DNA of 64,000 nt from Bugula neritina (Eukaryota > Animalia > Bryozoa), in contig OZ037766.1 of the NCBI GenBank assembly GCA_964035545.1, forward strand, positions 30,370,773 through 30,434,772, read 5' to 3'. Positions within the stretch are counted from its first letter, which is position 1. Each line of letters starts with the position of its first letter. The notes beneath the pieces are model-generated. The model saw only the letters and a list, made by a program, of their open reading frames with translations, searched no databases and was not told the origin of the DNA. The translations under genes and the position numbers were made by a program. Positions 9,934 to 26,188 of the stretch are shown here, one piece after another.

Positions 9934-11177
9934 GTACATGCCAAAGTTTGTGGAACACCTTCACTACAGACTTATAGATGTCAGTATGTTGAAAGAGTTA
10001 GGCAAAAGATGGATGCCTGATGTGATGACCAAGGCACCTAAAAAAAGTGACAAACACAGAGCACTAGATGATATTTTAGAATTTAGACAGTATTGCTGAG
10101 CTTCGTTTTTCTAAGGAGGCAATGTTGATTTCTCACTAGGTACAGCGTTTTCTTAATGTTTATTGGTTCATTTGCCAAGGAAAACTTCTGCCTACTAGAT
10201 TTTACACCACCTGTTATAACGAACCCAGAGCAGATTAACTAGGCCTATAGGATCTAATGCTTTGTTTACCAGGTCAATCTTGACTATAAATTGTACCTAT
10301 AGCTTCCTTTACAAAATTAATAGAATCTTCCTCTTTGAAAAGTGCCCCAAGGGAAGAAAGTTTAGCTTGGAAACTATTAAAATTAAAAGGTTTGCATACA
10401 CAATAACCCAGATAGTGGTATATCAATTCTTTAAACCTACAGCTTCTAAATAAGTTACTTTCCCTGGTTTAATTCTAGTATTTTCCTGACTTGGCATTTG
10501 AATCAGCGCGGAAAAAAGAGTTTTGTAGACTCCGTAGTTAGAATGCTTTCAAGCACCCAAATGGTTGTTCCACTAGCACAACTAAACCACAATCTTTTTG
10601 CATTGATTTTACTTTTTTTGGCAGTTTTATCTTTTTATGGCAAAGATACCTTTTATTGCCGTTATAACGCTAAATTTGTAACATCAAACTTGGAGGAGGG
10701 TAGAAGAGGGTAAATTTAGCACAGCTGAGCAAACTTATGTTATATGTAAAGTCAAGAAAATTGGCTTTCATCAGCTCAAAGGTAGAGCTGGGTGTCTCGA
10801 AATTTAGTGAGCTATAATCTAAAGATATTTTTACAGCTGAAATTATCTACAACAAGCCTGTAAAATGTTTCCAACTATTCCATTGCAATTGGTCCAATTC
10901 ATAAATAAGCTGATATTTTGGAGACATTAAAGTAAAATTTTAATACGCCTAGTATTGGCCCATTTCTCACTTTATACTATACGAATTGTAATACTGTAGA
11001 ACTGTGCTTTTACTTTGGTGAAATTCTTCTGTAATATGTTGTAACTCTTTAGAAATTTTCAGTACAGTAAACCTAGAAGGTTTTTTTTTGTAATGCTAAC
11101 CAGGTGATTTTAACCTTGTATTTTTGTTGAAATTTCATAAATGCAATCTCTATTCTAGTGGTACAAACACCTAATAG

Positions 11178-11949: not shown

Positions 11950-13445
11950 CCAGTCTATCGAAGAAATAAAACATACACCATATATAAATTAAATAGAGCT
12001 ATTGTTGTTTTAGTTCTACTGTTTTAAAAAAACGACAGACTACATATATTTACTTGCACTAACATCAACAGCTGAAATTGATAGTAGATCATTTTATTTC
12101 CAATTAAACTAGAAAGAAGGTACATAATTGTAGCAAATTCAAATAAAGCACAATCAATGCAAAGTATTATATTGTAGTGAAACTGTGTTTTTAGTAAGAT
12201 AATAAAAGGCATTACAAAAACCTGAATATTCAAGGCACTCTAAAATAAATGGTTATTCTAATATAATGACATCTCATTACCAAAGGTTGGTGATCAATAT
12301 AAGGCAAGCATAAACAATCTTCATTATCAAAATATGCAAAATATTTTAAATATTAAAAAAAAAGGTGTGCACTAGCTGCAAAAATAAGCAAAAACTATTA
12401 CTACTATGATGTTTAGAAGTTTTGTGCTAAAATCATGCTTAAAACATGATTCAAGAACCACCTCACTGTTTAAAGCATTTCTATTTTTCTGATCAACCAC
12501 AATAGTTTTGATTTGTGCTCTTTGAAAAAATTAATGTGGTGTTAAAAATAAAGCCATGAATGAAAGATGTATAACCAAATATAGCCGGTCTATTGTGAAG
12601 TGAGATGATGTGGGTGACATATGAGAATGCTATAGACTTGCAAGGTTCTTATCTAATACTGGTATTATCTATGGAACATTCAAATAGGGATTGGAATGTT
12701 ACTAGGAATATTATTACAAAGCATAGTGTGTGAGCCAGAGTTTAGCCTTAGCGTGAAAATTCATGCAAATAGTTAGTATTATTCAGTGTGCAACCTGAGT
12801 TAGGCAGTTGTTGAGATAGTCGTGACAAAATGTAGAAGTTAGTTCTTTAGAAACATTTTGAATTCAATCACTTTCAGCTGGGATGGAATAAGACAGCGTC
12901 TAAAATGGTATACAACATAATCTGGCAGACTGTAGAAACTTGAAACATATGTGCAAAATGTGATTTGAAAAGTTAAGATGTAAGAAAACCGCAATGAGCA
13001 GAGATCAACCAATTTAGCAGCATATAAGTACAGTACATACTGTTTAGACTCTAGCACAAAGGTCAAGTCAGAGGATTTATTAAAAGAATAAATGAGAGAA
13101 ATAAATAAAATAAAAGAATAAAAAAATAACATAGGTCACTATTCAAATTTAGGTTTCCTAAATTCAAGTTGTTTATCTAATATTTAGCAGGGTATAACTT
13201 TGGATTCAACCATGTGTAGGCTATATGTGTATCATTAGCTTTTACTTTTACCTCGAATACCTTTGGCTTTCACAATTTCAAGTCAATTGATTGATCGACA
13301 CAAAAGTGTTGCAACGAGTAAAGAATGTCAGCTATTTATCAACAAGTCGTATTAATAAATGTCATTATAAGCTTGAAATACAATTCAATGCAGGTTTGCA
13401 CAATAAAATATCTTGTGTATACAAACTAATTTAGAGATGCGCAAT

Positions 13446-16400
13446 TTAATCCATCAATTTTCCATTCTTACAACCTGGAATTTTCAATAATGGGACTATT
13501 TTTATTTGATGAAGTATAAATTTACAACTCAAAACCTTAGGGCAAGCATAAATACAGGCATGTTGGTGCTGATCGACACACCACCAAGGAGGATACTTTG
13601 CACAAACCTCTGTGTGTGATACCATGATCTCATCAAATATTTGGAATTTGCCTGTCAAATCAGTAGCCTGGTCAAAATGAGTTTCATTTTTCCACACCTC
13701 TATGAGCGACTTCAGATACTTGTAGAGGTTGTCTTGCTGAGTAAGCAGCTTGAAATCATCCCCAGCCTCACTGAAATGTGCAGTGAAGAAGATTTACACC
13801 AGACGTGAAACATATTGCGGCTCTGCTGAACCAAATCAGCATATTGTTCCGAGCAATAATGATTTTTTAGACAGGAATTCTAAGAGAAAAACACTTACTA
13901 ATTCAAAAAAAGCAGAAAAACCTGGTCATAGAGTAAAGCTAACTGCAGTGTAAAATATTACTGGTTAAAGAAAAAATTGTATGAACAACAAAACAGAACA
14001 GATATAAAAAGCTATGTCAGTGAGTTTCATTGCTTGTGTACTTTAAATTACATCATGTAAAGACAATATCTAGGTATGTTAGTTACTAACCTCTGAGCAT
14101 TCTTGTAAGAACAATAGTACTTGTCCAAGCTTCTGTAGAGCCGCTCAAACTTGTGATTTTCAAGTTCAGGATGACTCTTATCCGACCCATTCTTTAAGGA
14201 AAGCCCAAGTTGTCGCATAGCCTTAAGAATGTATTTAACAGCTTCACCAGACTTGCCACAGTCGGATAGAAACTTGGCGTAGTACCTAAAGAATAATAAA
14301 CCCTGTAGATGTCTGTTTGAGAGGGTCGGGCAGAAACAAACTTGCTCACAATACTAACTGGCATCTGTTACATACAAATGGTTTCTGACCCAACATAATA
14401 GAAAAATTTATTTTATCTTATTCTAAGCTTTTTAAATTATTCTAAACTTCAATGTACATAAAAATCTACACTACCCATAGTTGAACACAAACAACACAAT
14501 AAAGAAACACTAGGACTATTAAAGTGCCCAACACAATCTCTTAAAACAAAATAAAATAAAAGTAATTTTTTTTCTAATATATTATACAATAGCATCAGTG
14601 ACAACTTGTATTTAATAAAATTAAAGTTGAATATCTTCAAAAAATTAACACAAGCCAGTGTCAATTAATAAAAAGATGCCACAATTTTATTACCCAACCT
14701 TTCAATAATGGAAATAGAGAAGAAAAAGTTTCTATTTGAAGTAAGCCAATGAATAGCTAATGATAAAATAAGACAGCCCTAAAGACCAAATCTCATCCAG
14801 CTGAAGTACCTGTTATCTGTTAGAATAGGATACTCAAATACCTGTAACAATAACAGAGGGCGCTATTTGGGAACACTTGCTTCTTGGCTAGTTCTTCCAC
14901 TTGTGTCAGCAACTGCTCTCCGCTGACAAAATGCTGCTCCTGATTAGCTGGTTCTAGCTGATACAGTTTACCTGTAATAAGATAACCAAGTCTTATCCAT
15001 ATATTATTCATGGCAGTCGTAGAATTGTCATTTCAGCTTGTGATTATTAGTTTCTATGTATACTGTATGCAGTAATTTATGTCACAACAGCTTTAGGACT
15101 AGTGGCCAACGCTAAGTTGGATGAGCATAGTCTATGAATTTTACAGCTCTGCAAGCAAGCAGCATATCCTACATGCAACATCAACGGAAAATGTATATCG
15201 AATAAATAACTAATCCCTAAAAATAATGATGATTAAAAAATTAAAAGCAATTACAATCAAAGCAATATTGAATACTGAAAAAAGATGCCCGTTAAATATA
15301 TTCTGCCATCAAATAATTTGTTATTAAAAGTCGTACCATAGCAGTTGATTTTCCATTCAGCACAAATCATCCTGTGGTAGTCATCATATTTCAGGTTTGA
15401 TCTCATCAGCCCTGCTTCATACGCATATCTTTTAACATCATCATCACCAACATTGGACAATTCTAAAAGAAGTATTCCACTTTAATCACTGTCACCACAT
15501 ATTCATATACCAAGTCATCATATGACATGATAAAGTTGATACTACTACAACTGGTAGATTGACTGGTCAGAATTCCGAGACACAAAAAGTGTTGCAAACA
15601 AATGTTACCATCCAGCTGGTCTCTAATAGAGCGGAGTTTATCAGAGGAAGTCTCTCGATCAATCTCCATGGCCAACCTTTCTCTATCAGTGATGAGACCA
15701 GCCAACAGGTGAACACCAGTTTCTTCATACAACTTTCTGGAAACTTCCAAAGCAGCTTCTGACTGCCGTATACACTCATTTACTTCTTGAGTGTCTGCAA
15801 GTGAACAGGTAATGCAAGTTGGGAAAATGTGGCGTCACAGTATTGTAAATATATGGCAGAGATTATTGATTAGGACACTCCTGATATTCACATACAAAAG
15901 ACTGACTCTACGAAGTTATACAAAACAATAGTAAGCATCTCTTTACAATACTCAATATAAACTTACCATCTGAGCACTTGCTATAAAGTTTAGACCAGGT
16001 ACAGCAAATTGTTATCAGAATTTCAGAAATAAATACATGAACTAATGTGTCAATTTCCAGAACTGTCGATATTCCACTTTTTCGTCCTTTCTCTTCCAAC
16101 AACTCCAATTTCCTGTGTATAATATAACAGCATAATGTTGAAACAACAGCAAACCTGCTTGTCCCATTTTATTGTGTCTCACATAAGGTCAAGAGGTTAG
16201 ATGATAAAATCTGCATGTATTTTTAGTTAAATCAACTGTGCATACATTAGTAGATAAACGTGGAAAAGTTTCAATAACCAGTATCCAAATGAAGAAACAT
16301 TACGCTTTTATGCAATAAAGGGTTTTGCTCAAAAGCAACAGCAGTTTTGATTGGCCAATGCATGAAAATGGAGAAGGCTGATTGGCTAGTCACTTGAATA

Positions 16401-19400
16401 AATGGAAAGAAACAAAAAGACTAGGCGTGAAACTTACTCTCTGGTTAAATGGCCATTCACAAGGTCTTTGTATTCACAGATATTCAGCATGTTATTCAAG
16501 TCTTTTTTCGTCAGTTGGTGGTATTGAGGCAACTTATCAATAAAATCTCTGTACTCTTCATCTTGTAGTAGGGAGTGCTGTATACCAGTTTCATACAGAA
16601 TACATGCCACTTCTTTGTGTCTCTGAGAGACATCCACATTACTAAATACCACAAAGTACACTGTCATTACATGCAATAAACATTTGACTATTACAGCAGC
16701 TACAGCACTGTGAAAGAATAAAAAGTAAAATATATAGTTTAAAAAATATCTATACAGAAATAAATTGAATTTTACCTTTGTTCCTTTAGCAGACGGTCAT
16801 AATTGTACCCGCCTCCCATAACCAGCTCACAATATTTGTCTCTTGCTCTCTGAAAATATTTCTTTTCCTCTGTGGAGCCACTTGACTGGGACAACAAGCA
16901 GTAACCAATCCCAACCAGTAAGTTGCAATGCAGAAACTGAAATATTCACCCTAATATACTTAGTTAACCAAAACACACCATTGTGGTGATCGTGCGAACA
17001 TTGCTGAAAAGATATACAATAAACATTTGACTATTACAGAACTGTGAAAGAATAAAAAGTGAAAAATATTGCTCGCCACACCACCTGGGATACTGGCCAC
17101 TTTCTTGCATTTTTAAGAAACATCCATACTACAGAATTTATTCTATTTAGATGTGAATGTATAAGAAGTTTGATCAGGGAGCAGCTGTGGTCTAGGGGTA
17201 AGAGCGTTTGCCTAATCAAAGTCATGGGTTTGATCCCAACAAAGACCATTGGTGATGTTAGGAAGAGCATCCAGTCATAATTGCTCCTCTGTCACATATG
17301 AATAAGTCCTTAGCCTGATCTAACAAAAACCCTTTCCATCAGCGGTTTTCTCACAGGGATGGCGTATATAAACTCGCGTGAGTATAAGAAGTTTGATTCA
17401 CTTTGATTGGCCAGCTAGACAAAAAAATGTAACTAACAACCCTCATTATAAAAACAGAATTGAGAGCTAAGCTAAGCTGTACCCCTGTTCCTCCAGCAAA
17501 CAGTCATAACTGTACCCGCCTCCCATAACCAGCTGACAATATTTGTCTCTTGCTTTTTTCAACAGCGTTTTGCTTTCGGCAACGCCACTTTTTTGAGACG
17601 AGAGACAGTAGGCAACCCGCACGAGCAGGTCACAGTGAAGTAGCTGCAACAGGATGAGTCATCTGACATGAGCAGCCAATCAGAATTTACAGAAAATATT
17701 AGAAATTGCCATGTTGTTCTATGAACTATAGTGACCATAATATGCAACATGCTATTTTGATTGAAGGGTCAAAAAACTACACAAGACACAGCAAAAATAT
17801 AGATTTTGCTAAAAATTTCAGGTCAATAGGTCAGTACTCATAATATAATTATAATATAATACCTAATTAAGATTTTAACACCATGCTTTTATTGTTAACT
17901 AAGTGAATAATGTGAAAATAGACTCTAAGAAGTTAGTATTACTGAACAGCTAGACTACTATTAAAATCAACAAAATAAATTAATTCCATCAAGCAGTAAC
18001 TACCGCAAATAAAAATAGACGTTTTATTAAAGAAGGTTAAACATAACACATCTAGACAATGTATTTTTTCAACAACCAACATTGTTCAAATTACTTTTTG
18101 GGTAATAGGAGATGACATTAATCACAGAAAAGGACAAAGATATAAAAAATATGACAAGGCACATAGGAATTACATGTCGAAGTAACGCACCTGAACAAAC
18201 GGAGTGCGATTAAAACTCGCGGCTATTGCTGTATCTAAAGTAAGCCCATGGGCAGAGTAGAACTCTAAAAACCTATCCTGGTGTCTACGGCCATCTCTGG
18301 GCAGTACACGAGTAAATCCAATCAACGCCTTCCTACAAAAAAAATTGTGGCAAGTTTTTAAAATTCAGTAACTCAACTAAAAATTGAAGGTGTCTGGTTA
18401 TTTGAGAGTTTCTGCTGAGTCCACAACACCATGAGGCAATTTTGCCTGGAACATCAACGCCTGATAATAACATACCTTTTTCTGCTAAATTAAAAAAGAA
18501 AAACTTTGTATAGAAAATATCAAAAGTTACATTAATAGTAAATATAGTATACTGATGTTTTTACTTCAAAAGATCAGGTTCCTCTTCCTTTTTACAGAAC
18601 AGTTTCAACGACTGCTTCACAAGTTTATGCAGACGCAACAGTCTGCTTTTGTTCTCAGTTCTCATCACACAGATTCCTCGCTCACATAACCGATTACTTA
18701 CTAATCTGTTAATTTCTGAAGCCTAAAACACATTGAGTCGAAATCAAGAGAATTGCAATCACAGCGTATTGAAAAGAATGAAAACATTTTTCTTTAAAAA
18801 AGAGATAAGATGTCCATATACGTGCAATCTCTAAGCATTGTGAGGATTGATATAAAATCTCACCAGTATGTCAGTAGTTGAAACAGTTTCCGCACAAGAC
18901 ACTATCAATTCTCGAGGCAGATCCCTTTCATTGAAGAAGGACAGAACTTTGAGCAACTGCATTGACTCCTCGGGAAAGGGAAGATCCCTTACTAGCCGAT
19001 CTATAGCTATTTTTATGGCTACGAGTGCACTTTGTTCACGAGCTTCAATTTCACCAACCCCACCTTCTTCAATCAAAGACTTGGTTTGTGATTCCATATT
19101 TTCCAGATAATGGTTAATGAAATCTTCACCATCGTCAGCCTAAATCAAATGAGAACCTATGGTCTTGGAGAAGTAATAAAATATATCAAAGTATCAGGTA
19201 GAATATACAGTTATGTACTAAAGTTAGGAAACAGCGTTCTTCATTACCTAAAGTTAACAACACAGGCAATAATTGTACATGCAGCGAGGTTTCAACAGCT
19301 TTAAAACTATTTCCTTAGCTTTTAAGGTAACTGTGAACATAACACCATTTAAAAAACGGTTTGCTGCCTGCCAGCAATTCTACGCTATTGTGATGTAAAT

Positions 19401-21131
19401 AACATTCTCATTTCTCACAAACTCACTAACAAAATATATTTTACCATTTATTAGATGTTAAATAGTCTCTAAGCGTAGGGCCACACGGTGCAAATTTTCG
19501 CAGACGAAAGTTTGCACCACACTGTATATCATTTTCAAAAGAAAAACTTATCTTTATCACAGAAATATATAAGGAATATTTTTGGCATTGGCTAGCCATG
19601 AAAATGCTTCAGTTACTCAAAATAGATTCTGAAATAATGAAGAGCCCTGCCAACTTTATCAGCAAGTTTTTACAAAGTTATGAATATTTTCACTGGTTTA
19701 AAAATATATACCACTGCTTCAAATATTCATTAATTAAAATATGTAATATAATTATACATTGAAATAACACTTAATTTATTCAAATTAGCAAAAATAAGCT
19801 AAAACTTCAACAAAATAATTGAACCAGTAAATTATTTTGAGGTTAAAAAAGCATGACAAACCTACAATAACTTTGTTCCTAAAACACTGAAGTTTAGGAA
19901 AGCAGAATTATATTACACAACTTACCTGTTCTGATTCAAAGCTTTTCAAAAATATTCGCAAAGCTAGAGCCATTCCACCAAGTTTATCCACAATTTTTCC
20001 AAAAGAATCATCATCCAAACGTGTGAACTTGAAAAGTATCTTGGCTTCCTCTAAAGTGAAGGGAGACACTTGAATAAAACTATCTTTACCAATGTGCTGA
20101 TATACAGCTGGTCTCGGGACACTCTTCATGCTAGTAACAAATATTGTCCAAGTACCCACATCAGGGACTTGAGCATCAGAAGTTTGTTGAGAAGACCTCA
20201 TCTCCCTGGCAATGTGATCCAGCACTTGTAACAACTCTTCAAGTTTTTCAACATCATCAAAGATAAAGATTTTGTGATAGTCAGGGTAATGGGAATTTAA
20301 AGTTTCGAAAAACGTATAAATTATATGCCAATTTTTTGGCCTATCATCTGCAACTGGTTCAAAAGTTTTGTCTAGTTCTGTAAAAAGCTGGTGAAGGTCG
20401 TTGTAGAGTGCCTCAATACTGGTGCAATCAAATTTTCCATAAAGCCTTTTGCCACTTTCTTTCAAATTATCCCAAACCTTTGCAGATTTATGTCCAGCGA
20501 TATATGACTTTCCCAAGCCAGGAGCACCTAGAAAAATATGTTGGTATCTATAGTTCACTATGATCAACATCACAAAGCAAACAAATACATAATATGCTGA
20601 AAAACAAAATCATACGTTTTGCCTTAGGCCTATACAAAAAGTACTCTCATGGTACTTACTTTTTGTCAAGGAAAAACTTTATCGGCTTACTAAAAGTGAT
20701 AGCTTAGATGGTTGAACTAAAAGACTATTAATGGCAACTGTTGCCATTTTAAGAAAGCTTTCGCACTTTACAAAACTGGACTACTTAGGAATACTGAGTT
20801 TATTTGTTTATAAGTTTCCATAACAAGCAAAGCTATACAGCACTATTAAAATTTTTCATCATAAAATTTAGTATGTGTGAACTTTTATATAAAGATATGA
20901 AAAAGCTATAACACAATCACTGACCCAATTATATTTATACAACAATAAAAACTGTGCTATCAATGGCACAATGAACATGTTATTTATTCAATTTTAAAAA
21001 TAATGATCAATGATTTGAGCAACTTTACCAGTTAGAACTATGATGGAGGACCCTGGAACTTCCAAAACTTTATCAACATCTTTGGCAGCTTCTGTTTCAA
21101 CAAAGTCATGGTTGTATATTGGTGTATTCAT
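13446..21131 (-). CDS. NB-ARC/AP-ATPase-type STAND NTPase with helical (TPR-like) C-terminus; multi-exon, 3' end uncertain
   Basis: Phase-compatible exons 21131-21029, 20527-19926, 19139-18864, 18722-18565, 18332-18191, [17643-17483 or 16936-16776], 16641-16438, 16112-15967, 15794-15609, 15462-15337, 14971-14842, 14285-14091, then an ambiguous last exon near 13770-13446. Motifs: Walker A IVLTGAPGLGKS, Walker B IFIFDDVE, sensor-I IFVTS, GLPL-like LGGMALAL, MHD-like LRLHKLVK, and TPR-like YAKFLSDCGKSGEAVKYILKA. Confidence 0.8.
17175..17381 (+). mobile_element. tRNA-derived SINE, full length, 16-bp TSD
   Basis: A-box-like TGGTCTAGGGGTAAG and B-box-like GGTTTGATCCC. GTATAAGAAGTTTGAT is duplicated at 17159-17174 and 17382-17397. 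Other copies at ~36127 and ~48703. Confidence 0.88.
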
Positions 21132-21688: not shown

Positions 21689-24600
21689 TGTTTTATGTTG
21701 ATTTGTGATATTATTTCAGCTATCGTGAAAAGACAGAACGTGCTCGAGTTAGTTGATAAACGTAAGAGGCCGAAGCCGTGATTTATTACCACAATATATA
21801 TACACGAAAATACTAAAACTATTACAATAAGTGATACAATTAATTATTAAGATTATGACAAAAAATAGTAAAATAATAAAATAACAAATTAGAAATAAAT
21901 GTTTACATGAACACCGAACATCTCCCACAGAATAGAAAAAAGCTATTTAGATATGATTGTTTTAAGAGGGCACATAGTCTGCCATCCAACTAGGTGGCTT
22001 CCGTTCTCTGGTTGAACGTCTTAGATTGTCGCTATGATTGGCGCTCTCGGTGGTGTCAACCTGGGTACTACTAGCGTTTTGTTTAGGATCCTTTGGTGTC
22101 TCAGGACTCGCTGGCTCCGTGACGAGTGGTCTGATGTCTCGCCGGTTTCTCCGAAAGAGGTTGTTGTTAAGTTGTATGGCATAGGCTCTGCTACTCAATT
22201 GTTTGTTAATTTGCGCCTCCTGCCATTTTCTCCGGTGCTGACTCCAGTCTCGAACCAAAACTGGTTGCCCTTCTTTCAGCACTGCCAAATCTCTTGCACC
22301 GTCATTGCATCTCTGCTGCAGTTTTTCATTGCGGCCCTGCTTTTCCCACCAACCTTGGTTGTTCTCTGTTTCTGGCCGAACTTGTGGGAGTACTGACCTG
22401 GTGGGTCTTCCGATAAGTTGCTGAATTGGGCTGGCCGTCAGGCCTTCTTTGGTGGTGTTGAGATGTTCCAGTAACGCAAGTTCGGGCTCTTCACATCTGC
22501 GGAGTATACGTTTGGCTATCTTCACAGCAGACTCTGCCTTCCCATTGGACTGAGGATGATATGGAGAGCTGGTGGTGTGTGTGAAATTCCATGATTGGCT
22601 GAAAGTGGAAAACTGGTGCGAGGTAAACTGTGGTCCGTTGTCAGTGTGAACCTGTCTGGGTATTCCCAGGCGTCCAAAACAGCGCTTTATGGAGTTGATA
22701 ACAGCCTCTGCTGTTTGGTTGTCCAGTCGGTCATATTCAAGGTAGTCAGTCGTATAGTCAACAATAGTAATGTAGTGAGTGTGATTGTATTCAAACAAGT
22801 CAATTCCTACTTTGGTCCAGGGTTGTTGGGGAACTGTGTGGAGTAAAAGTGTTTCCTTCTGTTGCCGGGGAGCATCCAGTTGACATTGTCGACAGTTAGC
22901 AATATTGTTTTTGATGTCATTGGTGATGCCAAGCCAAAACACTGTGTGGCGGGCACGTCTTAGTGTGGAGTTAATCCCATTATGGCCGGTGTGAAGTAGT
23001 TGGAGAAACTTTCTCTGGAGTGTCTTTGGAATAATGGCTGGTAGTCCTTTGTAAACAATGCCATTGTCAATAGATAGTTCGTCCTGAAAGTGTTTGTACT
23101 TGTCGTGAGTTGTGCAGTTGGCAATGTTCCAGTCATGTTTAATAAGGTTTGTCAGTGTCATAAGTTCATTGTCCTGTGCAGTAGCAGTCCTAATGTTGTC
23201 AATTAAGTCGTCACAAACAGGAGCATCATTATTTTGAGAGTCAATGTGAAAAATGTGTTCTGGTAGTTGTTGATAGTTGGGGGAGTCAAAGTATGAGTCT
23301 CTTGAGAGTAAGTCAGCCGTGATCTGTTCAGCACCCTTTTGCCAAGTTACCTTAATGTTGGGGTATCTTTGTAAGTGAAGAAGCATAGCCTGCAACCTCC
23401 GAGATGCCTTATGAATGGATTTCCTGAAAATAGATACAAGGGGTTTGTGGTCAGTTTGGATAGTGACAGCATGGTGACCAAAGATATACTGGTCAAAGCG
23501 TTCAGTGCCAAACACTATGGCAAGGCACTCAAGCTCTAGTGGCACATAGTTCTGTTCCGATTTTGTTAAACTGCGAGATGCATATGCTACAGGCTTGCCT
23601 CCTTGCATGAGTGTTGCACCCACACCAGCATTTGAAGCGTCAGTTTGTATAGTTACTGGCTTGTTGCAGTCAAAGTATTGTAGAGTTTCTGAGTCAGTTA
23701 GTAAGGTCTTCAGTCTATTAAAAGCGTTCATTTGGTCGTCAGTCCAGTGAAAGTCTTGAGCATTGTCTTGTGTCAGTAAACGTCGTAATGGTTCAGATTC
23801 CGATGCTAGGTTGCTAATAAATTTTGACATGTATGTGATGTGACCAAGGAATCGTTTTACTCCCTGTGGAGATGAGGGAGGTTTCATCTTAAGAATGGCT
23901 TTTACTTTGTTAGGATCTGGTTTAAGTCCATTAGTTGTCAGTATGTGTCCAATGTAAGGTAGTTCGTCCTGAAGGAAGCGGGATTTTTCCTTGTTCAGTC
24001 TCAGTCCTGTCTGTCGAGCACGTTTGAAGAGCGCTTCAAGGTTTCTATCATGCTCTTTCCTTGTGCTTCCAAAAATTAGGATGTCATCTGCAACTATGGT
24101 GATGCCATCAAGACCAGCAAGATTTTCCGTGAGCCTTCTCTGAAACTCCTCCGGCGCTGATGCAATTCCAAAGGGTAGCCTTAGGTACTTGTACTTTCCT
24201 ATGGGAGTCCAGAAAGTTGTCAAGTCTGTAGATTCCTCAGCTAGGGGAATTTGATAGAAACCTTCTTTGGCGTCACACAAGGAGAAAAACTTGGCACCGT
24301 TGAGTTGTGGCAAAACATCTTCCAATGTTGGCATGACAGCGTGGTTTCGTTTAATTGCTTGATTGAGATTTTGCGGATCTATGCAGATGCGTATCTTTCC
24401 ATTAGGCTTGCGCACTGGTTGTAGATGGCTTATCCAGTCTGTAGGTGCTTCTACCTTAGCGATAATTTGACGTTGTTCTAGTTCAAGAATAGTCTTGATG
24501 AGATCTGATTTCATCGACAAGGGCACCTTCCGCGGTCGGACTTGCACTGGTACAGCTTCAGGTCTTAGCTCTATCCTATATTCCTGTTCAAACTTTCCAA

Positions 24601-26188
24601 GTCCGGTAAATATGTCATCAAAGTTAGTCAGTAAAGTCTGAAGGTCTGGGTCAGTAGTGGCAAAGTTTACATTCTCGCTTTTGGTGCTGGGCATTTGTAA
24701 TAAATCCAGGTGCAAACATGATTTCCATGACAGCAAGCTATGTTGGGTGGTTTCCACAACTAGGAATTTTAATGTAGTGTAACATCCTTGCTTGTTTAGT
24801 ATCTGTATCCGTGTCCACCCTAGTGGTGCACACTTGCTCTGGTCATACAAAGTTAGTACAGTATCAGTCGGTGTAAGTTTCGGTCTACCTAGCTTGTCGT
24901 AGTCGATCGTATTCAAAGTATTGCATGATGCACCAGTGTCAAGTTGGAATTCAATGTCATAAATAGTATCTGCTTGCTTAGCAGTAAGCATCGCTAATAA
25001 TTTACGATCTCGTACAGTAGTGGAGATAGTACTTACATGTTGAGAGTCACTGTCTGAAGAGTAATTCCAGGTGACTTGATTGGCTGTTTCGGTTGAGTCG
25101 CGATAATGATGCATGCGTGACCTGCAGTATGCAGCAAAGTGGTTAAATTTCTTGCAATGATTGCACTGTTTCCCATATGCTGGGCATGCTCGAGGTGGGT
25201 GATTGCCTCCACAGTTTCCACACCTAGAAGCACCAACTGATTTTCTGACGTTGGGCTGAGAGTGAGTGTGTGAAAGTTGTCCTCTGTGTTTATCAGTGTT
25301 ACGAGTGTCATTAGAGTGATATTGATGAGTCGGAGGTCTATGTTTTACCAAGTTCACTTGTTCGAGTCCATATGTGTTATCCTTAGTCATAGTCTTGTAG
25401 TCAATAGCCGATGCTTCTTCTCGTCTGCAGAGTTCAATTGCTTTGTCAAAGTCAGTCAAGTCAAACAGTTTCTTTCTAATCTTGTCACTTTCAATTCCCA
25501 GTATCAGTGCCTGTAGTATCAGTCGGTTGTACATGTCTTTTAAGTCACATAGTCCTGCAATGGTATGTAGTTCAGTCAAAAATTCGTCAATAGTTCTATT
25601 TCCTTGCTTACAAGTCAGTAGTGAGTGAGTCTTAGCCACTAAGTTTATTCTTGGTTTGCAGTAGTCATCAAACTGCGTCACAACTTTGTCATAGTCAGTT
25701 TTGTCATTGTTGTCAGTCCAGTTGAAAGAGTCGTATATTTGGTTGCCTCGGCGACCGATAGTTCTAAGTAGGTATGCAGTTTTCACTTTGCCTTCGGCTG
25801 TATCTTTCGATGTGGCCGTTAAAAAAAGTTCGAAGTCACGTTTAAAAATCTTCCATTCCTCAGGTAAATTCGGTCCATCTGCTAATGGTTTTGGCGCTAG
25901 TAATTGCTCCATGTTATTTCAGTGTAATATTAATAATAATTAGACTCGGGGCACCATGTTTTATGTTGATTTGTGATATTATTTCAGCTATCGTGAAAAG
26001 ACAGAACGTGCTCGAGTTAGTTGATAAACGTAAGAGGCCGAAGCCGTGATTTATTACCACAATATATATACACGAAAATACTAAAACTATTACAATAAGT
26101 GATACAATTAATTATTAAGATTATGACAAAAAATAGTAAAATAATAAAATAACAAATTAGAAATAAATGTTTACATGAACACCGAACA
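21689..26188 (-). mobile_element. intact, very recent Ty3/Gypsy (Mag-like) LTR retrotransposon
   Basis: 232-bp LTRs at 21689-21920 and 25957-26188 appear identical, TG...CA. 5-bp TSD GTAAT (21684-21688, 26189-26193). PBS TGGTGCCCCGAGT at 25956-25944 (resembles the complement of an elongator tRNA-Met 3' end); short PPT GGGAGA. Confidence 0.97.
21962..25912 (-). CDS. gag-pol: single-ORF Gag-Pol polyprotein (1316 aa)
   Basis: Tandem knuckles CGNCGGNHPPRAC-PAYGKQ-CNHCKKFNHFAAYC, LDTGAS protease, LPFGI and VADD RT, TDAS/ELE/TDH RNase H, HHCC plus D-D-E integrase (IDLF, TDNG, AESAVK). Confidence 0.97.
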   Translation of the reverse strand: MEQLLAPKPLADGPNLPEEWKIFKRDFELFLTATSKDTAEGKVKTAYLLRTIGRRGNQIYDSFNWTDNNDKTDYDKVVTQFDDYCKPRINLVAKTHSLLTCKQGNRTIDEFLTELHTIAGLCDLKDMYNRLILQALILGIESDKIRKKLFDLTDFDKAIELCRREEASAIDYKTMTKDNTYGLEQVNLVKHRPPTHQYHSNDTRNTDKHRGQLSHTHSQPNVRKSVGASRCGNCGGNHPPRACPAYGKQCNHCKKFNHFAAYCRSRMHHYRDSTETANQVTWNYSSDSDSQHVSTISTTVRDRKLLAMLTAKQADTIYDIEFQLDTGASCNTLNTIDYDKLGRPKLTPTDTVLTLYDQSKCAPLGWTRIQILNKQGCYTTLKFLVVETTQHSLLSWKSCLHLDLLQMPSTKSENVNFATTDPDLQTLLTNFDDIFTGLGKFEQEYRIELRPEAVPVQVRPRKVPLSMKSDLIKTILELEQRQIIAKVEAPTDWISHLQPVRKPNGKIRICIDPQNLNQAIKRNHAVMPTLEDVLPQLNGAKFFSLCDAKEGFYQIPLAEESTDLTTFWTPIGKYKYLRLPFGIASAPEEFQRRLTENLAGLDGITIVADDILIFGSTRKEHDRNLEALFKRARQTGLRLNKEKSRFLQDELPYIGHILTTNGLKPDPNKVKAILKMKPPSSPQGVKRFLGHITYMSKFISNLASESEPLRRLLTQDNAQDFHWTDDQMNAFNRLKTLLTDSETLQYFDCNKPVTIQTDASNAGVGATLMQGGKPVAYASRSLTKSEQNYVPLELECLAIVFGTERFDQYIFGHHAVTIQTDHKPLVSIFRKSIHKASRRLQAMLLHLQRYPNIKVTWQKGAEQITADLLSRDSYFDSPNYQQLPEHIFHIDSQNNDAPVCDDLIDNIRTATAQDNELMTLTNLIKHDWNIANCTTHDKYKHFQDELSIDNGIVYKGLPAIIPKTLQRKFLQLLHTGHNGINSTLRRARHTVFWLGITNDIKNNIANCRQCQLDAPRQQKETLLLHTVPQQPWTKVGIDLFEYNHTHYITIVDYTTDYLEYDRLDNQTAEAVINSIKRCFGRLGIPRQVHTDNGPQFTSHQFSTFSQSWNFTHTTSSPYHPQSNGKAESAVKIAKRILRRCEEPELALLEHLNTTKEGLTASPIQQLIGRPTRSVLPQVRPETENNQGWWEKQGRNEKLQQRCNDGARDLAVLKEGQPVLVRDWSQHRRKWQEAQINKQLSSRAYAIQLNNNLFRRNRRDIRPLVTEPASPETPKDPKQNASSTQVDTTESANHSDNLRRSTRERKPPSWMADYVPS

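Follow-up and report, generated by a model that had tools for sequence, protein, structure and literature searches.

The usual explanation for mutually exclusive exons is tandem exon duplication, and the known pairs tend to be old and conserved. Tandem paralogs undergo interlocus (non-allelic) gene conversion and concerted evolution, and mosaic genes are known from immune-receptor clusters. Pillmann et al. (2011, PMC3228551) and Hatje et al. (2017, PMC5740500) used sequence criteria to define clusters of mutually exclusive exons. Neighbouring exons that resemble each other frequently turn out not to exclude one another, and in humans RNA validated only 1,399 of 6,541 sequence-defined candidates (PMC5740500). 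Hatje et al. explicitly accept exclusivity that is enforced by the reading frame, and report that 82% of mutually exclusive clusters are conserved across mammals (Hatje et al. 2017, PMC5740500).

Here we analyse a pair of exons, A and B, in a window of 64,000 nucleotides from the bryozoan Bugula neritina (GCA_964035545.1, contig OZ037766.1). The Ensembl Rapid Release annotation of this assembly, tzBugNeri2, draws mainly on aligned transcripts (PMC11480708). Their host is a minus-strand gene, W, whose neighbouring paralog, P, lies 42 kb away. Like the sequence-defined clusters, the W pair shows all the sequence features of mutually exclusive exons: the two are homologous, adjacent, internal, equal in length and phase and bounded by canonical AG/GT sites, and their joint inclusion shifts the frame. 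Unlike the classic clusters, which come from tandem exon duplication and are mostly conserved, this pair stems from a paralog's exon that was captured, and the ortholog in a second B. neritina assembly does not have it. The locus also resembles interlocus conversion, in that W and P have homogenised flanks, the divergent blocks have sharp breakpoints and the patches differ by lineage; it departs from the usual pattern in that one W patch apparently overshot the homologous register, adding exon B rather than replacing an exon. W would then represent another route to such a pair, in which an over-extended repair copy places the exon of a sister gene beside the native one, and as an ortholog in a second assembly lacks B, the states before and after the event can both be read. 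If both isoforms are real, the locus offers a dated example of how an exon switch begins; if only B is used, it offers a case of exon replacement through a two-exon intermediate.

The pair and the exons on either side of it are as follows (a slash marks an exon-intron boundary or, in exon 7, a codon boundary).

Exon 5, 18191..18332, minus strand: 142 nt, ending in phase 0; "old type", with pS 0.95 and pN 0.18 against exon 5 of P.
Exon A, 17483..17643, minus strand: native (W-type) exon 6, 161 nt, phase 0 to 2, donor GGG/GTACAG.
Exon B, 16776..16936, minus strand: captured paralog-type exon 6, 161 nt, phase 0 to 2, donor AAG/GTAAAA.
Exon 7, 16438..16641, minus strand: 204 nt, paralog-type; begins T/AAT, so that a phase-0 reading gives TAA.

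Exons A and B are both open in frame 0, with boundaries ...ttgcag/ and /gtacag for A and ...tttcag/ and /gtaaaa for B. A preliminary description, made from the letters alone, had reported two open 161-nt minus-strand exons bounded by AG/GT and running from phase 0 to 2, all of which was borne out, with matching peptides. Its count of 34/54 identical residues corresponds to our 34/53 (64%) plus a split 54th codon (G versus S), and the differences that it placed in residues 9-30 lie mostly in residues 8-30. This similarity is far above chance (E 2e-17 in a six-frame search of the whole genome). Exon 5 ends in phase 0 and exon 7 needs one base to complete its first codon, phases that are backed by collinear homology with a full-length protein of Watersipora subatra. 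Since A and B are each 161 nt (2 mod 3), an in-frame mRNA holds exactly one of them. As had been predicted, including both or neither shifts the frame: exon B in its +1 frame, which is its frame after exon A, reaches a stop at codon 50, near its end, while exon 5 joined straight to exon 7 gives an immediate TAA at the first codon of the latter. Judged by the reading frames, exon length alone makes A and B incompatible in one mRNA, and a productive W mRNA can contain exactly one of them.

W and P are old paralogs whose family, a small one found in bryozoans, consists of STAND-like P-loop NTPases (~860-900 aa), and W itself encodes an uncharacterised STAND-type ATPase. The exons with the relevant motifs are listed below.

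Exon 2, 19926..20527, minus strand: P-loop NTPase core, with Walker A GAPGLGKS across the junction of exons 1 and 2, Walker B IFIFDD and a GGMALAL motif.
Exon 4, 18565..18722, minus strand: contains an LHK motif that by eye resembles the MHD motif.

Both Walker motifs are present in the translation of exons 1 and 2 and fit the patterns GxxxxGK[ST] and hhhhDD. Like the NB-ARC/NACHT STAND proteins (Apaf-1/CED-4-like, NB-ARC-TPR), W combines Walker A and B with a GxP-like GGMALAL and an LHK that ends a winged-helix-like segment, and its helical tail may resemble their helical-repeat sensor arms, to judge from a TPR-like signal in a language-model search. Unlike them, the W protein has no LRR, WD40 or N-terminal effector domain, with only ~35 aa before the P-loop. 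Exon 6 lies directly after the winged-helix-like region, within the all-helical tail.

Analyses of W were run exon by exon, by reference. Exon 2 gave weak Pfam matches to AAA, NACHT and nSTAND3 (NACHT at 12 bits against a cut-off of 26.7), and no Pfam family, NB-ARC and NACHT included, matched the W protein above its gathering score. The Watersipora homolog scored 24.0 for NACHT, 16.1 for NB-ARC and 26.1 for nSTAND3, each below its cut-off; LRR families were absent from the Pfam matches of the W exons and of this full-length homolog, in which Pfam TPR also found no match. Across the family, 7 of 21 members matched NB-ARC and 5 of 21 NACHT at E<=0.01, the best NB-ARC value being 5e-7. A profile search of the PDB returned weak matches only, to a plant NLR (5e-4), to Dark (0.04) and to a TPR-sensor STAND protein, and the Atlas language-model neighbours of residues 385-863 all belong to TPR clusters (score 0.91), which we treat as a lead only. 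The preliminary designation of W as an NLR-like STAND gene therefore holds for a P-loop NTPase with STAND-like motifs, but "NLR-like" is too strong for a protein with no LRR and no NACHT or NB-ARC match at threshold. An AlphaFold2 single-sequence model of the 905-aa Watersipora homolog had a mean pLDDT of 34.9 and was unusable; the alignment of the Watersipora protein with the exon-wise fragments was visibly off (fragment identities of 11-18%) and was kept out of folding. The family is tiny: 1.84 billion representative proteins include 25 relatives. Related contigs were sought in metagenomes with the exon alignment and, separately, by means of a degenerate DNA pattern; neither gave a match, possibly because the sequences searched leave out near-identical records. 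A word search with exon A gave zero candidates, and one with the Watersipora tail returned Watersipora paralogs and nothing else.

Comparison of W with P shows where the two exons come from. The genes are mostly 84-92% identical, introns included, with a central cassette (exons 5, 6 and 8) that is deeply diverged and saturated at synonymous sites. The old type in W comprises exon 5, exon A, a stump of exon 7 and exon 8 (pS 0.6-0.95 against P), while exons 1-4 and B have a dS of 0.03-0.15 against P. W-P similarity is interrupted at 18577-17021 and at 16432-15819, and it first ends in the last ~15 nt of exon 4 (from ~18577), which is the 5' edge of old block 1. The elements of this mosaic downstream of exon A are the following.

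Dead 5' stump of old-type exon 7, 17090..17137, minus strand: matches the beginning of the live exon 7 at 71% identity (E 7e-5).
Paralog-type ("young") patch, 16432..17069, minus strand: ~640 nt, comprising x-frag, the 3' end of intron 5, exon B, intron 6 and exon 7.
x-frag, 17014..17069, minus strand: copy of the intron piece 3' of exon B; left arm of the direct repeat around the B unit.
x', 16671..16735, minus strand: right arm of the direct repeat, with a 9-nt stretch absent from x-frag.
Exon 8, 15967..16112, minus strand: old type, with pS 0.62-0.68 and pN 0.27-0.29 against paralog-type copies; inside old block 2 (~16432-15819).

Exons A and B share 69.8% nucleotide identity (pS 0.66, that is, saturated synonymous sites; pN 0.20), whereas B matches the single exon 6 of P at 95.0% identity and that of family member L015 at 96.2%, and W positions 17021-16432 are 91.7% identical to P. 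The dN/dS comparison of the two exons that the preliminary description had proposed gives an omega of ~0.15, indicating long-term purifying selection. In the second B. neritina assembly (GCA_010799875.2), the ortholog, L024 (VXIV02003168.1), has exon A alone (L024:12686-12846; 161 nt, intact, 89.4% identical to exon A of W) and lacks the ~340-nt B unit, and P, L015, L023, D1, D2 and the Watersipora proteins each have a single exon 6. The pair itself, which the preliminary description had suggested seeking in paralogs and related species, thus does not recur among these sequences. Because the ortholog has A without the B unit and no other member has more than one exon 6, A is the exon 6 native to W. 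B is P's version, carried on a P-type unit of ~340 nt that runs from the end of intron 5 through exon 6 into the start of intron 6, with a direct repeat of 56-65 nt on both sides.

W and the ortholog have in common the stump, exon A and a SINE at the same site; the ortholog has a single x element. Its exon 2 carries two 1-nt deletions, a sign of pseudogenisation or of an assembly error in this copy, and the case for constitutive use of A there is weaker for it. Exon 12 is another patch that differs between the lineages, and outside the divergent cassette the copies cluster by genome. The most likely cause of the arrangement in W, we infer, is that break repair copying from P overran and was closed by end joining. 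The overshoot would have left two traces, the old exon-7 stump and the direct repeat; x-frag meets paralog-type intron 5 at ~17013-17021, and the repair junction shares TG only, possibly up to TGTAT. The duplicated intron sequence pointed out in the preliminary description is real (17069-17014 against 16735-16671, 52 of 56 aligned bases identical plus a 9-nt gap). Insertion of B here and its deletion elsewhere through the 56-65-nt repeats are indistinguishable, as the neutral-site tree of the three copies is a star (12, 11 and 11 intron changes). We considered and rejected the ideas that the old blocks are a fast-evolving young duplicate, given their saturated synonymous sites and unalignable introns, and that exon A is a recent, decaying duplicate, given that it is an old exon conserved in the ortholog.

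Our preferred reading, held tentatively and at somewhat less than even chances, is that captured B now sits beside native A in a B-dominant exon replacement to which A contributes little. The spliceosome would probably recognise both exons, and most productive W mRNA would carry B, as suggested by its stronger donor and by purifying selection in the W lineage; A would serve, if at all, as a minor and weakening alternative, and transcripts holding both exons would be cleared through nonsense-mediated decay. On this account W represents exon replacement underway rather than an evolved isoform switch. The B donor reads GTAAAA in W as against GTACAA or GTACGA in P-type genes, and the A donor GGG/GTACAG as against GAG/GTACAA in the ortholog, with AAG/GTACAA at the only exon 6 of P. 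The weakness ascribed to the A donor in the preliminary description is therefore confirmed relative to the ortholog, but softened by the fact that GTACAA sites serve the sole exon 6 in both P and the ortholog. Against the preferred reading, the pyrimidine tract of the A acceptor is longer in W than in the ortholog. Exon A of W alone has R where the others have G, A or S, and C where they have R or K, two radical changes at family-conserved positions. Changes specific to the W lineage number 2/161 in exon B, 4/204 in exon 7 and 12/204 in introns (B versus introns, Fisher p=0.027), small counts in which ongoing W-P gene conversion could mimic constraint on B. Against the ortholog, pN/pS is 0.37 gene-wide and 0.06 in exon 7, so selection acts on the reading frame downstream of the two exons. 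The single sequencing run found for the locus consists of DNA contigs, with a uniform depth of ~113 across introns and no splice joints.

A somewhat less probable alternative is working mutually exclusive splicing, in which A-only and B-only mRNAs would both be produced in appreciable amounts and both be maintained by selection. The protein would then exist with two versions of the helix pair that follows the winged-helix-like region, and the frame together with nonsense-mediated decay would enforce exclusivity with no dedicated RNA structure. The frame logic permits exactly this, the low omega and the concentration of differences mainly in residues 8-30 are consistent with it, and B appears constrained in W. 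Neither exon has lost its open frame or its canonical sites over ~5% neutral divergence; for exon A the probability of full intactness by chance is only 0.2-0.3 at the measured indel ratio and 0.1-0.45 across the settings tried. Polarised changes in exon A number 4 in W (plus up to 4 ambiguous) against 9 in the lineage of the ortholog, which has no exon 6 but A. The intactness of A and its few changes in W speak against the preferred reading. Several observations argue the other way: the pair lacks conservation (A alone in the ortholog, B alone in the paralogs), sequence-defined human candidates mostly failed RNA validation as cited above, and in W the A donor has weakened alongside the two radical replacements. 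The sole RNA pairing candidate, of 16/18 nt between the exon A acceptor and the intron after B, has its intronic arm also in P and L015, both of which lack exon A, and so it probably did not evolve for the choice between A and B. Control of that choice by RNA structure seems doubtful, the best inverted repeat not being W-specific.

A broader version of the two-isoform idea, which we consider possible but doubtful, is that in all B. neritina lineages W and P keep two ancient versions of the cassette (exons 5, 6 and 8), the rest being homogenised by gene conversion. The capture of P's exon 6 by W through interparalog repair would at once have created a frame-enforced pair, 161 nt not being divisible by three, and the pair would still be at an early stage, with both isoforms made. 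In this small bryozoan STAND family the central cassette resists homogenisation, as would be expected of a recognition surface.

It is improbable, in our judgement, that the locus is mainly non-productive, with A and B both included by default in a frameshifted transcript that is degraded or truncated, and with W dying or throttled by unproductive splicing. Double inclusion is the naive expectation, since the splice sites of both exons are used constitutively elsewhere, those of A in the ortholog and those of B in P, and an LTR retrotransposon with 100% identical LTRs lies ~560 nt upstream of the W start codon and is missing in the ortholog. Against this, the downstream exons are under purifying selection, the exon branches of W are the shortest among the three copies compared, and each of the old-type exons 5, A and 8 has kept an open frame between AG/GT boundaries even though conversion from P cannot repair them.

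Still less probable is exclusive use of exon A, with the B unit a silent intron passenger and W making its ancestral protein. In its favour, exon A is the native one, shares its old cassette with exons 5 and 8 and has no rival in the ortholog, but the B acceptor is nearly identical to the constitutive one of P, the B donor is the stronger, and the scarcity of lineage-specific changes in B relative to the adjacent introns is unexpected for a silent passenger. The origin first proposed, tandem duplication of exon 6 within W followed by divergence of the upstream copy, fits the tandem layout with its repeated intron piece but is very improbable and already contradicted, as identity is 70% between the exons, whose synonymous sites are saturated, but 91-96% between the intron pieces, B and the P exon agree at 95% of positions, exons 5 and 8 are as anciently diverged as A, the ortholog has A without B and the other members have a single exon 6.

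Three features of the region went unremarked in the preliminary description: a 204-nt SINE between the two exons, the dead exon-7 fragment and the presence of two anciently diverged sequence layers. The stump contains an in-frame TAA in the W genome and has no stop in the ortholog. The SINE lies in the intron after exon A.

SINE-like dispersed repeat, 17175..17381, no strand assigned: 204-nt SINE with a 16-nt target-site duplication.

ARAGORN found no tRNA in this element, its tRNA-like head being a by-eye reading only. The 16-nt duplication occupies ~17397-17382 and 17174-17159, and the repeat is abundant, with a word depth of ~387,000, at least 3,626 candidate copies and full-length matches at 85-87%.

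The gene W was reconstructed exon by exon from its splice sites, its reading frames and its collinear match to a full-length homolog in the bryozoan Watersipora subatra (XP_067944050/52), and all searches and translations were performed on individual exons. Its sixth exon is present in two versions, A and B, each of which retrieves the other at E ~2e-17 when the whole genome is searched in six frames; further exons extend to ~14114.

Exons of W (E1-E8) and elements of the intron between A and B
21131-21029, minus, E1
20527-19926, minus, E2
19139-18864, minus, E3
18722-18565, minus, E4
18332-18191, minus, E5, ends in phase 0
17643-17483, minus, E6 version A, 161 nt, frame 0 open, AG/GT edges
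~17381-17175, strand not given, dispersed repeat (SINE) of 204 nt with a 16-nt target-site duplication
17137-17090, minus, dead stump of another exon 7, 48 nt, 71% identity to the E7 acceptor and initial codons
17069-17014, minus, x-frag, repeating 16735-16671 (x') of the intron 3' of B
16936-16776, minus, E6 version B, 161 nt, frame 0 open, AG/GT edges
16641-16438, minus, E7, requires one base for codon completion
16112-15967, minus, E8

The preliminary description of two equally long, open, AG/GT-bounded exons is confirmed, with the same peptides (34/53 residues identical), and the frame-locked either/or choice that it proposed from the phases of E5 and E7 also holds. When both exons are included, B is read shifted by one base, the frame expected after A, and runs into a stop at its codon 50; when both are skipped, the 5' end of E7 (T|AAT) gives an immediate TAA. 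The reading frame of W is kept only with exactly one of the two. The reported duplication of a nearby piece of intron was borne out as well, in the form of x-frag and x'. The SINE has at least 3,626 candidate genomic copies and stands out in the DNA run by its very high word depth, and the exon-7 stump carries an in-frame TAA in W.

Comparison with P, a paralog 42 kb away (contig 2:30340006-30349746) that matches W at 84-92% over exons and introns, shows that W is a mosaic of two layers. P has a single exon 6, whose identity is 95% with B and 68% with A, and the similarity between the genes is interrupted twice, from 18577 to 17021 and from 16432 to 15819. Divergence is high for A vs B (pS 0.66, pN 0.20), for E5 vs its counterpart in P (pS 0.95, pN 0.18) and for E8 vs P-type E8 (pS 0.62-0.68, pN 0.27-0.29), and low (dS 0.03-0.15) for E1-E4 and B against P. 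On the basis of these values and of the similarity breaks, E5, A and E8, together with the exon-7 stump, belong to an old layer, which split from the P type long ago under purifying selection (omega ~0.15 for A vs B). Within this old region, 17069-16432, comprising x-frag, the intron 5 3' end, B, intron 6 and E7, is a P-type patch. One contig from the DNA run X1 links 15816 to 16432, exactly the edges of the second old block, which contains E8; it could represent the paralog or an allele whose block differs.

Related sequences show that the exon 6 native to the W lineage is A and that B is a captured P-type exon. Two contigs of GCA_010799875.2, an earlier Bugula neritina draft genome (PMC7576161, PMC11480708), were reached through proteins P0009, P0020 and P0023. 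One of them, L023, is of the P type and has B alone. The other, L024, carries the W ortholog: its alignment with W runs through the old block, with the SINE at an identical position and the exon-7 stump in common, and its exon A (12686-12846) is exactly 161 nt, open, bounded by AG/GT and 89.4% identical to that of W. L024 has one x element with E7 immediately after it, and therefore the ~340-nt unit comprising the end of intron 5, B and the start of intron 6 is missing from L024. Of two JGI contigs, L015 is P-type with one B-like exon, and L016 has W-type sequence beyond the E4 breakpoint up to the contig end. One exon 6 each is also present in the distant paralogs D1 and D2 (contig 2, ~25.57-25.60 Mb) and in the Watersipora genes; its lengths of 149, 143 and 161 nt are all 2 mod 3. 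Because A occurs in L024 without the B unit, P-type genes have B only and the other relatives have one exon 6, A is native and B captured. In the NTPase exon of L024 (9677-10275) there are two 1-nt deletions, one within a T run, and the assembly's gene models are fragmented there; this reflects either a genuine pseudogene or an assembly error.

The pair had initially been attributed to tandem exon duplication, which is wrong in view of the 95% identity of B to the exon of P, the A vs B pS and the presence of A alone in L024. What is new is the origin: a paralog exon captured beside the native one within a gene-conversion mosaic, with a second assembly retaining the state without it; the A/B pair is lineage-specific. 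Identity between W and P beyond the central cassette is ~92%, vs 87-90% for either against L015, L016 or L024, and within the cassette sequences from different genomes group by type, a pattern expected from repeated W/P gene conversion that halts at the unalignable cassette. Exon 12 (W 14114-14290 vs L024:15595-15750) has a pS of 0.61 next to ~0.1 in neighbouring exons, and is a further conversion patch, different in the two B. neritina lineages.

At its right edge, where E7 ends, the P-type patch is in homologous register. The left side is non-homologous and runs from the exon-7 stump through x to a junction at ~17017, where TG (possibly TGTAT) is shared. These edges fit an overshooting repair copy, in which a break in W would have been repaired by copying from P past the homologous point and the over-extended copy then sealed by end joining. 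The B unit may have been gained in this lineage, or it may be older and have been lost in the L024 lineage through recombination between the 56-65-nt x repeats. The left part of the L024 x resembles x-frag and the right part x'. Neutral sites give a star tree, the introns having 12 changes specific to W, 11 to P and 11 to L015. Under both histories A and B have been together in W for ~5% neutral divergence.

The W protein has ~35 residues ahead of a Walker A (GAPGLGKS), then a Walker B (IFIFDD), GGMALAL and an LHK motif resembling MHD, these motifs being read by eye, and ends in an all-helical tail. Neither it nor the Watersipora homolog has an above-threshold Pfam match (AAA, NACHT, nSTAND3 and NB-ARC were all sub-threshold). 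Among 21 family members NB-ARC matches in 7 and NACHT in 5 at E<=0.01, and a PDB-sequence profile search gave weak matches to a plant NLR, Dark and a TPR-sensor STAND protein. The language-model neighbours of the tail are TPR clusters only (score 0.91), which we treat as a lead only. The family is very small, with 25 relatives at E<=0.001 among 1.84 billion representative proteins. It is fair to call it a STAND-like NTPase with a probable TPR-like arm; of the earlier label of an NLR-like STAND gene, the STAND-like part holds and the NLR part is not upheld, no LRR having been found in the protein. Since exon 6 lies ~50-105 residues past LHK, a location within the sensor region is plausible.

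The sole sequencing run found is of DNA, its contigs crossing introns at uniform depth and without splice joints, and the sequence evidence on the use of each exon is indirect and mixed. Our first, tentative choice is that B dominates, with A fading or serving as a minor alternative. W-lineage changes number 2/161 in B, 4/204 in E7 and 12/204 in the adjoining introns (B vs intron p=0.027), and the B donor (AAG|GTAAAA) is better than GTACAA and GTACGA, the donors in constitutive use in P-type genes. The A donor has weakened from GAG|GTACAA to GGG|GTACAG, and A of W uniquely has Arg at a position occupied by Gly, Ala or Ser in all relatives, and Cys at one that is Arg or Lys in every other member. 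A two-isoform switch using both exons is possible, if doubtful. In favour of A, the exon is intact, an outcome with a chance of only 0.2-0.3 under neutral decay at the measured indel ratio (0.1-0.45 across all settings tried); it has 4 polarised changes (plus 4 ambiguous) in W vs 9 in the ortholog lineage; and its acceptor pyrimidine tract is longer in W than in the ortholog. On the other hand, the only candidate RNA pairing for steering the choice is also found in genes without A, and sequence-only candidates make a weak prior, since 1,399 of 6,541 were RNA-validated in humans (PMC5740500). Mostly double, non-productive inclusion is improbable, as pN/pS relative to the ortholog (0.37 overall, 0.06 in E7) and the open frames and intact AG/GT sites of old exons 5, A and 8 argue against a dead W. 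Use of A only is very unlikely.

On the ortholog branch, 8 of 9 polarised changes in A are non-synonymous, mostly within variable residues 8-30 (~17620-17554; L024:12707-12775). Between the two lineages pN/pS is 0.6-0.8 in E5, A and E8 vs 0.06-0.4 elsewhere, and the central cassette is fast-evolving at the protein level.

A Ty3/gypsy-like LTR retrotransposon (21689-26188), carrying a single open gag-pol frame of 1316 aa (25912-21962, minus), lies in a low-complexity stretch ~560 nt upstream of the W start codon. It is absent from the ortholog in L024 and its two LTR stretches, 232 nt each, are 100% identical; the insertion is very recent and may influence the W promoter. Just downstream of W, a short plus-strand exon (9934-10099) resembles, by eye, oligoribonuclease/REXO2, and has 75% protein identity to a copy adjoining D1 (contig 2: 25593182-25593328); the duplication of the STAND gene therefore included its neighbour.
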